From Diadema antillarum (taxonomy: Eukaryota): DNA of 64,000 nt. Every line of letters begins with the position of its first letter. The first letter of the stretch is position 1. The stretch covers positions 186,001 to 250,000 of the forward strand of contig NW_027271575.1 in assembly GCF_040938485.1 (NCBI RefSeq), given 5' to 3'. Shown one piece after another: positions 10,788 through 34,340 of the stretch. The position numbers were made by a program, and so were the translations under genes. Below the pieces are notes generated by a model that was not told where the DNA came from, did not search any database, and saw nothing but the letters and a program-made list of their open reading frames with translations.

Positions 10788-11650
10788 ATGGCGTCCTTAC
10801 GGCTTTCTTTGTTTAGTCTGGTAAGCAAAACGAGATGTTCGTGAATCATTTTATCTATTTCCCCTGGTTTTCATCAAGGATTAATCTATAACTACCATGA
10901 ACTCTTAAGTACATTTCTGAACCTTGTTCCTGAATTTTAAAAATAAACAACGAAAAATAAGCAAAACTCATAATAATAATGTCTGCGGACCCATTAGAAT
11001 GATACGACATGCATTGAGTTAGCTCTTGGACTGTCTGCATTACTAACCATTGATTTAACGAGAGACATGAACAATTTAAACTCCTTGACTTCGAGATCAT
11101 GGTAATCCCCATTGGTATGATAACGGGCGTGTTTTCGTGGTTTGCTGTTTGTTGTTTTAAAGAAAAGAAGAGAGAGAAAATGTGATATTATCAACCAACT
11201 TGCCTGGTTCCTTGTAAGCAATATGTTACCTTGTTAACTAAGGTTTAAACCATCTACAAGGGAAAGTGTGGAAGGAGGTATGATACTGAATATTCGACGT
11301 GTTTTTCAGTTTTCTAACATTTAACAAACAACCATGACAACTGCACTAAAGGATTGAATTCCTGAATAAAGAAAAAGAAAGTGTAATGAAACAAACTTTG
11401 CTAGCATTTACAACTTAGTTATTCAACATTATCATTTTGCAAGGCAAATTCCCAACGTGGAACTGGATTCAATATACATGGAAAGTTCACAATGATAACC
11501 ATAGTCAACCAACGCCTCGTTTTTATACCGATGAATGGAAACTCGTTTGTTCTCGTGTTCGTCGAACTTATGTGAGTTTGTTTCCACTTTTCTCTCCCCA
11601 TCGATAGATTTTGTCCTTCATCTCATGTTTTCAGTCCAACTGTGTGAGAG
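10788..11650 (+). CDS. Signal-peptide exons of the TSP1 receptor
   Basis: Start context acaagATGG. The spliced product [26 protein letters not shown]|ETTISVT has a hydrophobic core and a V(-3)/G(-1) cleavage pattern. Donors are GTAAGC (10821) and GTGAGT (11651). Confidence 0.65.
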
Positions 11651-32600: not shown

Positions 32601-34340
32601 CCTTATTTCATAATAATAGGGACAGTGACTGAACCTACTTTTTCTAACCTCTTTCTAGTACGTTTACGATTGTCGAACTACGTTTATAGTCACCTGACTT
32701 TACAAAAAATAGTTCAACAGAGCGATGACGATATCTCACCGACTTTTCCGATATCTTTGACAGAGAAGTGATCCGAATTCGATTTTCATTGATAGAAAGC
32801 TTTCGAGTGAACAGCCACGGGACCATGAAATGGCTTTGAGTCCCACTAGAACGACAATGCAATGAGAATTACCTATCTTGCCTGGGGGCACAAATGCTGC
32901 AGCGCTAAGGTGTTCGAACCACGGACATCGTGCTTGAGTACCCGTGGTCTTGTTCACAAAAGCTACAACGTATACAGCTCCGTCCTCCTGTAATCAGTTT
33001 GCTATCTCAGCCACAAGCGTAATGTCTAATTCTCGGTATCGCCAATACCAGTCTCACCTCCCTGCCAATACCTAGGTGCCGTGTGTAGAGCAGCGTTTTA
33101 GATGCATTATGGGATAGCTCAGGGGACAACCTTGCCCCGGTTTTGGATGCATGTGCACTCAAGGTCACGTTCCGTCTGTATTCAGGGGTATTTTTTTTTT
33201 TGAAGACTTCTTCGCTTTCCAGTTATATGACCAGCACATATTGAAGCCTTGCATTAGTGAAGTATGACTCTAATGACCGCAAATCAGTACAATTTTGAAA
33301 TTTTAAACTCTTTTTTTTTTATTCTAAGCGAAGAAAAAAGCAGCAACGAAAGAAAAGCATTATGAAAATTACATTGAATTGCGTGGAAGACACGCGCAAG
33401 ACAACTGGAAGCGACAATGGCACCGAGGAATCCCACAGTGCATCTGTGACAGGACTTTTTTTTAGCATGCGCAAAAGTTTTCTGCGCATTGACAATACCG
33501 AGAAATAAACCGCTGTCTGTGTTATTTTTCTGTCCAGATATTCCATCATGAGGAGCTGTTGGCATGAGGAACCAAGGAAGAGACCCTCATTCAAGACTCT
33601 TGTCCTCCTCCTGGAAAAGATCGCGGCAGAAAAGAAGGTTAGAAATCTTTGAAAGTGGATTCGAACATTTTGAAAGCTTAATTCTTACACCAACATATCA
33701 GCAAGCAGCAATAAACTAAACAGAAAAGGATTTTCCCATAATTTGTCTCAAGATCCTCTCTTTATCTCAATTGTATTCAATATATTAACCCGTTACCTGC
33801 GAGATTCTATAATTCCCATCAGTTAATACACGGTCTAAAATAAAACTTTATTTTCTCTTTTTTCAACAGAATGTGCAAAGAAATTTATAAAATTTGACAT
33901 GCATTTTATCTAATGATACAAAGGTAGATAAGAATAAAACTTGTTCATGTCTATGATCAGTAAAAGAAGAAGCATCTCTTTCCTTGTCTCCTTCATTTAT
34001 CTTCTCTTTATCCATCTTTCAATCTCTCTCTCTTTCTTTCTTTATTTCTTTCTCACAAATTGCACTCTCTTTCAAATGAAAACCCGACTAAAATGTGTCG
34101 CATTATCGACGAAGTTCTGCTTTGCAAGTGAATCTGTAGTGATACCAGTAAAACAGATTCATAAGAGTTATGAGATCTAGAACAAGGATTACTTGAAGAG
34201 CTAAGATATTTAAGCATTTTATTATTTTTTGGTTTCGTTTTTCACCCCAGGAAATAATTGACGTGAGCCAGTACGACAACAAGAAATATGAAGATCTTAA
34301 CGACAGGCGCCCTCACACGCCCGGTTCGGTGTCAGGGTAA
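10788..34340 (+). CDS. TSP1-repeat single-pass receptor tyrosine (pseudo)kinase, about 1331 aa, 26 exons
   Basis: Exons: 10788-10820, 11608-11650, 14240-14335, 14650-14820, 15445-15615, 16082-16243, 17382-17549, 18144-18314, 18704-18867, 19755-19811, 20452-20559, 21205-21474, 22030-22218, 22968-23100, 23883-23933, 24369-24661, 25130-25757, 26456-26592, 27916-28084, 28659-28769, 29312-29475, 30380-30487, 31359-31470, 32142-32238, 33538-33637, 34251-34340. All have AG/GT ends and compatible phases, summing to 3996 nt with one terminal stop. The N gap at 27546-27743 could hide an exon. The first two exons are less certain. Confidence 0.9.
11709..12239. mobile_element. Non-autonomous DNA transposon, CACTG termini, TA-flanked, with many GGTGTT/AACACC subterminal repeats (CMC/EnSpm-like)
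   Basis: TA|CACTGTAAAAA ... TTTTTGCAGTG|TA, with an internal hairpin near 11721-11765. An inverted second copy lies at 61398-63376. The superfamily is inferred from termini only. Confidence 0.82.
13944..14008. repeat. (AAC)n microsatellite
   Basis: About 21 CAA units with one interruption, in a receptor intron. Confidence 0.95.
14650..18314 (+). CDS. Five thrombospondin type-1 repeats, one per phase 1-1 exon
   Basis: [21 protein letters not shown]..., [21 protein letters not shown]..., [20 protein letters not shown]..., [19 protein letters not shown]..., [19 protein letters not shown].... Each carries the RxRxC-xNPxP-xGGxxC pattern and six cysteines. Confidence 0.97.
15616..15725 (-). mobile_element. 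tRNA-derived SINE head fragment
   Basis: The minus strand reads TAACTCAGCCGGTAGAG (A box) ... GGGTTCGAATCCCG (B box), followed by a non-tRNA body running to the splice donor at 15616. The acceptor and anticodon stems do not close properly. Confidence 0.65.
18704..18867 (+). CDS. Transmembrane exon of the receptor
   Basis: [55 protein letters not shown]: a 24-aa hydrophobic stretch followed by a basic stop-transfer segment. Confidence 0.95.
20290..20420 (+). mobile_element. Probable LINE/SINE 3'-end fragment
   Basis: GAGCCCATGGAAGACCAGCG...ATGGGTTATCCAG resembles GATCCCATGGAGAACCAGC...ATGGGCTATCCAG near 37075-37120. Both are followed by short tetranucleotide tails (CAAT; AAAC). Confidence 0.35.
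21205..21474 (+). repeat. Coding repeat exon: ten R-P-x-S/T motifs (six RPGTA)
   Basis: [90 protein letters not shown]. Confidence 0.92.
23447..23541. repeat. (ATATT)n pentanucleotide microsatellite
   Basis: About 19 tandem units with two T>G variants. Confidence 0.95.
24369..25757 (+). repeat. Coding repeat exons: eleven copies of GG[MIV][TN][LMF]xQAxxGK with Q/P-rich spacers
   Basis: Three copies lie in exon 24369-24661 and eight in exon 25130-25757. The period is mostly 22 aa in the densest part. Confidence 0.92.
27010..27205. mobile_element. Tc1/mariner (pogo/Tigger-like) MITE
   Basis: 22-bp TIR CAGTGGACTCCCGTTATAACGA / TCGTTATAACGGGAGTGCACTG with one mismatch. TA on the right flank; the left flank reads AA. 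Confidence 0.78.
27546..27743. other. Assembly gap (others at 36522-36665, 37588-37773, 50096-50259, 53137-53336)
   Basis: Runs of N. Confidence 1.
27916..33637 (+). CDS. Tyrosine-kinase-fold domain with degenerate catalytic motifs (7 exons)
   Basis: [24 protein letters not shown]...AVVKVL...[24 protein letters not shown]...[12 protein letters not shown]...[37 protein letters not shown]...[12 protein letters not shown]...[23 protein letters not shown]...[32 protein letters not shown]. Confidence 0.96.
29727..29970 (+). mobile_element. tRNA-derived SINE with a CORE-like central domain
   Basis: A-box-like TGGCCTAGCG and B-box-like GGATCGAATCC, then GTCCTTGGACAAG...CCTCTCGACCCAGGTGTACAAATGGG resembling the CORE-SINE central segment, and an (ATT)-rich tail. 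Family assignment is by memory of the motif. Confidence 0.6.
31770..32056. mobile_element. Degenerate TIR element with repeated CACTGTG/CACAGTG motifs
   Basis: CCTGCTAGGAAGAACAC versus GTGTTCTTTCCAGCAGG (17 bp, 2 mismatches), with TA-rich flanks. Confidence 0.55.

Follow-up and report, generated by a model that had tools for sequence, protein, structure and literature searches.

A predicted echinoderm receptor pseudokinase with five thrombospondin repeats in the genome of Diadema antillarum

Can five thrombospondin type-1 repeats (TSRs), a transmembrane (TM) helix, a very long repeat-rich linker and a tyrosine kinase-like domain belong to one gene, and if so, what kind of receptor would such a gene encode? 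The question is raised by a locus at positions 10788-34340, plus strand, of a 64,000-nucleotide (nt) stretch of the genome of the sea urchin Diadema antillarum (NCBI RefSeq assembly GCF_040938485.1, contig NW_027271575.1, positions 186,001 to 250,000 of the forward strand; the whole stretch is hereafter the window), where a first-pass annotation had proposed a receptor of this unusual build. We conclude that the locus is one gene and favor, at a probability of roughly 0.7, the reading that it encodes a type I single-pass receptor of an echinoderm-specific family, in which a rod of TSRs and a motif-bearing linker are combined with a dead kinase of the FGFR/RET/Cad96Ca group that would act as a scaffold or co-receptor.

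When exons are chained along the plus strand of this locus, 26 of them join across introns that all begin with GT and end with AG, giving a coding sequence of 3996 nt that translates into 1331 amino acids (aa) without a single internal stop codon. The encoded protein consists, in this order, of a signal peptide (residues 1-25), five TSRs (58-339), a single TM helix (356-380), a linker of 653 aa, a full-length PK_Tyr domain (1034-1297) and a short tail. Hydrophobic 19-aa windows with a Kyte-Doolittle score above 1.6 are found in two places only, residues 1-19 and 352-380, and the combination of a signal peptide, a single TM helix and a C-terminal kinase is the architecture of a receptor tyrosine kinase (RTK), with the kinase predicted to lie on the C-terminal, cytoplasmic side of the membrane. 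The gene is collinear with an independent Strongylocentrotus purpuratus protein, XP_030839405.1, and signal peptides are clear in the orthologues. All 26 exons also map, with equal lengths and with their AG and GT sites kept, to the syntenic locus of Diadema setosum, for which a chromosome-scale, gap-free record is available; spliced like the window gene, that locus yields an intact 1331-aa open reading frame (ORF). The synteny includes the flanks, with an annexin gene (PF00191) on the upstream side and, on the downstream side, an MFS_1 gene in minus orientation. Thus, the coherent 26-exon ORF of the first-pass annotation could be rebuilt and recurs in a second species, and the domain order that it proposed agrees with the Pfam matches, the hydropathy and 10 orthologues; its five TSR exons of phase 1-1 and its repeat-rich linker of about 650 aa were likewise recovered.

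Proteins that combine PF00090 (TSP_1) with PF07714 (PK_Tyr_Ser-Thr) in this architecture are present in all five echinoderm classes, namely, in echinoids (S. purpuratus, Lytechinus variegatus and D. setosum), holothuroids (Apostichopus japonicus and a truncated Holothuria model), asteroids (Patiria miniata and Asterias amurensis), an ophiuroid (Amphiura filiformis) and crinoids (Antedon mediterranea and Anneissia japonica). Between the window protein and its D. setosum counterpart, identity is 97.1%; it is 57% for S. purpuratus and 47-48% for holothuroids and crinoids, with collinearity over the full length. The window protein has the complete set of family features: five TSRs, a TM helix, the conserved block next to it, repeats of the RPG[ST]A and GMTxxQA kinds, and a kinase with HG[DE] and N-x-x motifs. 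When the 54-aa hinge exon was compared with a protein library clustered at 50%, eight matches were obtained, one of which is the 1260-aa XP_030839405.1, annotated as 'uncharacterized protein LOC756169', with the same architecture. Among the best 120 of the 2346 matches to a full-length profile, TSP_1 and PK_Tyr occur together only in echinoderms, most of the other proteins being TSR-rich (SCO-spondin-like, hemicentin). No protein from outside the echinoderms with this architecture, with the juxtamembrane block or with a closer kinase is among the matches listed, and a look-alike search of the ESM Atlas returned generic RTK clusters only, none of which joins TSP_1 to a kinase. The architecture search that had been suggested as a check thus bears out the suspected lineage-specific distribution within the matches listed; given that matches in these searches depend both on words in common and on length windows, only the top ones being listed, absence outside the echinoderms, in particular from hemichordates, is not proven.

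Constraint on the gene was measured by Nei-Gojobori counts between the window gene and the D. setosum locus, which differ by 137.5 synonymous and 34.5 nonsynonymous changes (synonymous divergence, dS, 0.16), so that the ratio of nonsynonymous to synonymous divergence (dN/dS) is 0.07 overall. Along the protein, this ratio is 0.04 in the TSRs, 0 in the TM and juxtamembrane segments, 0.12 in the RPG array and mid-linker, 0.16 in the GMT repeats, about 1 in the spacer before the kinase (residues 966-1033) and 0.006 in the kinase (43 synonymous changes to 1 nonsynonymous). Decay of the gene is thereby excluded; the counts also show that the linker exons encode protein and that constraint is at its tightest in the kinase-like domain.

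The ectodomain and the membrane anchor are encoded by six consecutive exons:

14650-14820, 15445-15615, 16082-16243, 17382-17549 and 18144-18314, plus strand: exons 4 to 8, the five TSRs, each repeat on an exon of its own in phase 1-1.
18704-18867, plus strand: exon 9, the 25-residue TM helix and a basic stop-transfer stretch, recognized by hydropathy and kept in all orthologues.

Pfam TSP_1 matches four of the five TSR exons, with E values from 1e-6 to 4e-15, and likewise four stretches of the D. setosum protein; the fourth TSR exon has a W-S-E-W motif and a six-cysteine pattern and can be aligned to the other TSRs. For every TSR exon, the best match in S. purpuratus is its positional counterpart. 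The W-x-x-W and C-S-x-T-C-G motifs and the six cysteines typical of the TSR superfamily are present, and the repeats carry consensus sites for C-mannosylation (WxxW) and O-fucosylation (CxxS/TCxxG). N-terminal of the TM helix, Pfam detects only domains of the TSP_1 type, and no Ig, cadherin, EGF, ZU5, death, GAIN/7TM or Sema domain. Among the crinoids, isoform X2 of Anneissia is devoid of the third TSR, and isoform X1 of Antedon has all five; the missing repeat fits the skipping of a symmetric phase 1-1 exon, so that the number of TSRs may vary by alternative splicing.

The linker between the TM helix and the kinase is rich in alanine (16%), glycine (13%), glutamine (11%) and proline (11%) and contains two motif arrays that follow a conserved charged block:

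19755-19811 and 20452-20559, plus strand: exons 10 and 11, the juxtamembrane exons, with a conserved charged block of 42 residues.
21205-21474, plus strand: exon 12, the SRPG[ST]A array, with 9-10 copies of RPx[ST].
22030-22218, 22968-23100 and 23883-23933, plus strand: exons 13 to 15, which include the conserved segment TPxMMxxLxQLDxQLxEMAG, placed by alignment and splice sites.
24369-24661 and 25130-25757, plus strand: exons 16 and 17, eleven repeats of about 22 aa built around G-[MIV]-T-[LMF]-x-Q-A-x-x-G-K, counted by regular expression.

The charged block comprises about 25 columns that are invariant among six orthologues from three classes, shows no nonsynonymous change between the two Diadema species and, in a search with this region, was found only in members of the echinoderm family among the matches listed. 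Each orthologue contains 4-11 copies of the SRPG[ST]A or RPx[ST] motif. The repeats of exons 16 and 17 have a period of 66 nt as detected by Tandem Repeats Finder (TRF), and the motif G-[MIV]-[TS]-[LMV]-x-[QE]-A-[MT]-x-G-K occurs once in crinoids, three times in holothuroids, 4-5 times in asteroids, five times in the ophiuroid, seven times in camarodont urchins and 11 times in Diadema; such differences between classes might reflect a tuned valency of the array. No part of the linker or of the juxtamembrane region matches Pfam or PDB sequences. Judging from its sequence, the linker is probably disordered, but the conserved elements show that it is not random low complexity. Beyond the kinase, Diadema, holothuroids and asteroids share a tail motif, K-Y-[EK]-D-[LM]-[DN]-D-x-R-P-H-T-P-G, with cysteine for tyrosine in crinoids; its P-x-T-P portion would fit a proline-directed site, and the portion around the tyrosine might be an SH2 site.

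The kinase-like domain is encoded by the seven exons that precede the last one:

27916-28084, 28659-28769, 29312-29475, 30380-30487, 31359-31470, 32142-32238 and 33538-33637, plus strand: exons 19 to 25, the kinase exons, with collinear PF07714 matches.
30380-30487, plus strand: exon 22, with the catalytic loop changed from HRD to HGD, DFG changed to NVS (KVSNVS) and a tyrosine-free activation segment.

PF07714 matches run collinearly across these exons (profile positions from about 42 to 255), and in the D. setosum protein the match, with a score of 248 bits, covers 1-255 of the 258 profile positions. By itself, the first kinase exon has diverged too far to be recognized by Pfam, but it can be aligned to ALK, INSR and IGF1R in their N-lobes. 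Signatures of the tyrosine kinase type are present, HGDLTTRN in the catalytic loop (L-T-T-R-N) and GVRWMSPES (R-W-M-S-P-E) further downstream. In the HMMER alignment to EGFR, K-V-S-N-V-S lies over K-I-T-D-F-G, with asparagine on the DFG aspartate, that is, the DFG motif is not deleted but substituted, and the same Asp-to-Asn change is found in 10 of 10 orthologues. Also invariant among the ten are the His-Gly of the HRD motif, the β3 lysine, the catalytic-loop asparagine, the APE glutamate and the second and third glycines of the glycine loop; at least 90% of them retain the αC glutamate. The catalytic aspartate is present in Diadema, holothuroids, asteroids and the ophiuroid, and is glutamate (HGE, four orthologues) in camarodont urchins and crinoids. 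Tyrosine is absent from the activation segment, the sequence of which scarcely changes between crinoids and Diadema. Substitution of asparagine for the DFG aspartate is the classic kinase-dead change, and loss of any member of the Lys/Asp/Asp triad defines a pseudokinase. The triad of VAIK lysine, HRD aspartate and DFG aspartate is incomplete here, and the domain is, by this definition, a pseudokinase, in a state ancestral for living echinoderms; the tyrosine pseudokinase of the first-pass annotation accordingly stands, with a full-length domain match and with DFG and HRD changed throughout the ten orthologues. The domain is predicted to be catalytically inactive.

Several observations weigh against the reading of this locus as one gene for a dead receptor kinase. 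For 10 kb of sequence, no RNA runs were listed, compared to 15 runs when every kind was admitted. Over positions 24366-30365, no splice joints occur in sequencing runs X8, X14, X15 and X5, which give unspliced, low-depth contigs and repeat pile-ups and behave as DNA. The orthologous proteins are all computational gene models, and the final junction of the D. setosum database model (EKI/SPQ, at about 30030-30650 of the locus record, L001) is non-canonical in the DNA, with neither GT nor AG; because of this 3' junction, the model looks homology-projected and is therefore not independent evidence of splicing. The AlphaFold model, built from a 10-sequence alignment, is poor (mean predicted local distance difference test score, pLDDT, 59, with the catalytic and activation segments below 50) and, at this confidence, adds nothing on the pocket or the activation loop. 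The 653-aa linker contains only three tyrosines, all at most 61 residues from the membrane, so that any phosphorylation there would be on serine or threonine. Finally, given that the β3 lysine, the catalytic-loop asparagine, two loop glycines, for the most part the αC glutamate and, in Diadema, the catalytic aspartate are kept, nucleotide binding or residual atypical activity is possible.

This last point bears on the main rival, an active atypical kinase that would transfer phosphate with asparagine at DFG and with HGD in the catalytic loop, for example with an unusual metal dependence of the kind reported for CASK, and would signal by catalysis. The residues just named, together with the invariant APE glutamate, are what such an enzyme would retain, the catalytic aspartate persists in holothuroids, asteroids and the ophiuroid as well as in Diadema, and a dN/dS of 0.006 agrees equally well with an enzyme and with a scaffold; all the same, the DFG aspartate is asparagine in every orthologue, a change known to abolish activity in canonical kinases, the HRD arginine and the activation-loop tyrosine are absent, and the catalytic base is not strictly constrained, being glutamate in camarodont urchins and crinoids. 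We therefore consider residual catalysis unlikely, although it survives better than the other alternatives.

A further alternative is that the gene represents no family of its own and is instead orthologous to a known RTK (FGFR, RET/Cad96Ca or TIE), having evolved fast and exchanged its ectodomain. Among solved structures, the best single-domain matches are FGFR4 (232 bits), followed by FGFR3 and FGFR2, and a Foldseek comparison with Swiss-Prot models, which gives only a rough ranking given the low-confidence query model, is headed by Cad96Ca (33% identity), FGFR4 (37%), Hydra FGFR, RET (30%), TIE2 and torso; moreover, the NCBI pipeline called one of the orthologues Cad96Ca. Identity nevertheless stays at 30-37% throughout, with 35-37% to vertebrate FGFRs and 31% to the FGFR of S. 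purpuratus, which is a separate gene, and, among the matches listed, the TM/juxtamembrane block and linker motifs are found only in the echinoderm family. Unlike FGFR, RET, Cad96Ca (Stitcher) and TIE, the proteins of this family have no Ig, cadherin or EGF domains, have lost the DFG aspartate and the HRD arginine and have a tyrosine-free activation loop, so that they do not qualify as FGFRs. Descent from a known RTK in this manner appears quite improbable. A recent duplicate of FGFR was also considered and rejected on account of the 31% identity to the urchin FGFR.

Somewhat less probable still is that two genes were wrongly joined, one encoding a long-tailed TSR/TM protein and the other a cytoplasmic kinase, with the split at an assembly gap or in the linker. 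This possibility centers on two features:

26456-26592, plus strand: exon 18, a poorly conserved spacer before the kinase, ending in phase 0.
26593-27915, no strand assigned: intron 18, with a run of N at 27546-27743 and, at about 27009-27200, an interspersed repeat of high copy number.

The gap lies just before the first kinase exon, the preceding spacer exon evolves at a dN/dS of about 1, in-frame methionine codons occur in the last repeats, and the runs supply no spliced joints; these points are in its favor. However, exon 18 ends in phase 0 at the donor CAG/GTACGG (26592), and exon 19 begins in phase 0 at 27916 behind a tract with 16 pyrimidines in 20 positions and an AG. With both exons in phase 0 and with canonical GT and AG, the run of N is intronic, 953 nt past the donor and 172 nt short of the acceptor. 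The gap-free D. setosum record has an identical junction and an intron of similar length, 1394 nt compared to 1323 nt in the window (198 of them N; coordinates only were compared), and the models in 10 species from five classes all join TSRs, TM helix, linker and kinase. In addition, the linker exons are under purifying selection (0.12-0.16), and no upstream exon ends in a stop codon. A split at the gap, which the first-pass annotation had named as one outcome that would overturn its proposal, is thus improbable. The orthologous proteins run directly from AALPRQ into KSDLDEF, with no extra residues at the junction, which led us to reject a hidden exon within the gap; an optional cassette exon there is possible, but none is needed. 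The break in the assembly is probably explained by the high-copy repeat, which sits just upstream of the gap: in run X5, the contigs attain a summed word depth of about 6e5 at 26966-27165, and many loose ends fall at 27009. A second short interspersed repeat, at about 29783-29932 in intron 21, has, like the one at about 27009-27200, a very high depth in all four runs together with many loose ends, and a poly-C run at about 26420-26445 lies just ahead of exon 18.

A pseudogene that merely looks coherent, as degenerate catalytic motifs and a low-complexity protein middle might suggest, can be dismissed, given the substitution counts above, the 3996-nt ORF that is intact in two Diadema species and the conservation across all echinoderm classes.

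The two ends of the gene required separate attention. The exons concerned are:

10202-10273, plus strand: an alternative first exon, encoding the N-terminus (MNMVWSG...) of the D. setosum database model.
10788-10820, plus strand: exon 1, with the ATG and the first half of the signal peptide; phase-0 donor CTG/GTAAGC.
11608-11650, plus strand: exon 2, which completes the signal peptide and passes from phase 0 to phase 1, placed by tblastn with the D. setosum protein and by splice sites.
14240-14335, plus strand: exon 3, a Thr/Ser-rich N-terminal spacer, phase 1-1.
34251-34340, plus strand: exon 26, the last exon, with the C-terminal tail and the stop codon.

Joining exon 1 to exon 2 creates a 19-aa window with a Kyte-Doolittle score of 1.79, and the counterpart of exon 1 is found at 6595-6627 of the D. 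setosum record, with its ATG and GT kept. The signal peptide obtained in this way is far better than that obtained via the start at 10202-10273, an exon in which 6 of 24 residues differ between the two Diadema species and which has no hydrophobic core; it may represent 5' untranslated region or an alternative start. At the other end, canonical sites for the last junction give EKIAAEKK/EIIDV in both Diadema species. Hence, the public D. setosum model probably needs correction at both ends.

Upstream on the plus strand lies an annexin gene at 1171-6983 (for example, 1171-1395, 3171-3530 and 6717-6983), recognizable by annexin-repeat text such as GTDE... and GVGTDEE..., and downstream on the minus strand, at about 41300-48800, a multi-exon gene of the MFS type (monocarboxylate-transporter-like), with hydrophobic ORFs at 43514-44185, 44420-44926 and 48322-48765. 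An open frame of 259 aa at 62405-63181, minus strand, resembles the C-terminal part of a long interspersed nuclear element (LINE) reverse transcriptase and appears to be a retrotransposon fragment. The introns of the receptor gene contain the microsatellites (CAA)22 at 13944-14008, (AG)26 at 16344-16395, (ATTAT)19 at 23447-23541 and (AAC)23 at 26750-26816.

How might a receptor of this build signal? TSRs generally bind matrix glycans or proteins, and the five-TSR rod would bind an extracellular ligand or matrix, which might shift the clustering or conformation of the receptor. Inside the cell, the multivalent linker could, together with the dead kinase domain, serve adaptors and an active kinase as a docking platform or co-receptor, and other kinases would phosphorylate the Ser/Thr motifs, and perhaps the tail tyrosine, in trans. 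By analogy with PTK7, RYK, ROR and ERBB3, the mechanism is probably that of a scaffold or co-receptor. More tentatively, and at somewhat less than even odds, the family might be an orphan one, confined to the phylum and at least as old as the last ancestor shared by all living echinoderms (some half a billion years), that constitutes an undescribed signaling module. In it, the TSRs would respond to matrix, to a microbe or to a secreted cue, and the signal would pass to a multivalent disordered array, with up to 11 GMTxxQAxGK units, about 10 RPG[ST]A sites and the charged juxtamembrane block as a conserved helix, and to a dead FGFR/RET-like kinase serving as a docking or allosteric module.

Is the family new? 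The first-pass annotation had called it possibly undescribed. With regard to the literature this stands, given that no description was found under the identifiers or keywords of the family in what is searchable, although a mention in older kinase inventories is possible. The gene itself, however, is already in public annotation, as LOC756169 in S. purpuratus and as models in D. setosum, Lytechinus, Asterias, Amphiura and Antedon, where it is uncharacterized: the names are either 'uncharacterized' or automatic misnomers (Shark-like, Cad96Ca, SMU1-like) that are pipeline guesses.

The known receptor pseudokinases, PTK7/CCK4, RYK, ROR1/2, ERBB3, EPHA10 and EPHB6, act as co-receptors or scaffolds and are likewise type I single-pass proteins that have lost one or more catalytic residues and are strongly conserved. 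They bear Ig, WIF, Frizzled-CRD/kringle, EGFR or Eph modules outside the cell, whereas the echinoderm family has TSRs only and thus does not belong among them; its kinase is nearest to FGFR, RET and Cad96Ca rather than to PTK7, RYK, ROR, ERBB3 or EPHA10/B6, it has the 653-aa motif-repeat spacer and, within the searches made, it is restricted to echinoderms. To our knowledge, a TSR-only ectodomain is used by no vertebrate RTK class. Extracellular TSRs are also found in the membrane proteins UNC5, ADGRB/BAI, SEMA5 and THSD1/THSD7, none of which, as far as we know, has a kinase-fold domain. An ENA metagenome protein of 1171 aa, with four or five tandem tyrosine kinase-like domains that mostly have HGN or HSN for HRD and thus form a string of pseudokinase domains, is unrelated (29% identity). 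Among unicellular holozoans (ichthyosporeans and Corallochytrium), TSP1 repeats are named among the domains of tyrosine kinases (PMC4342544), and the RTK repertoires of each holozoan clade are described in that paper as non-homologous to those of metazoans (Suga et al. 2014, PMC4342544). As far as the figure legend in that source allows a comparison, the pairing of TSP1 with a kinase is alike, no link to the echinoderm family being implied, and this domain pairing may have arisen more than once.

Only a small number of receptor pseudokinases are known, and all of them have been informative on non-catalytic signaling. The family described here, which is absent from the named RTK repertoire of echinoderms, adds a receptor pseudokinase that is conserved across the phylum and that combines a TSR-only ectodomain and an unusually long spacer of conserved short motifs with near-absolute constraint on the kinase despite an ancestral Asp-to-Asn change at DFG. 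With sea urchins being tractable embryological models, and the gene present in Lytechinus and, as LOC756169, in S. purpuratus, its function is directly testable.

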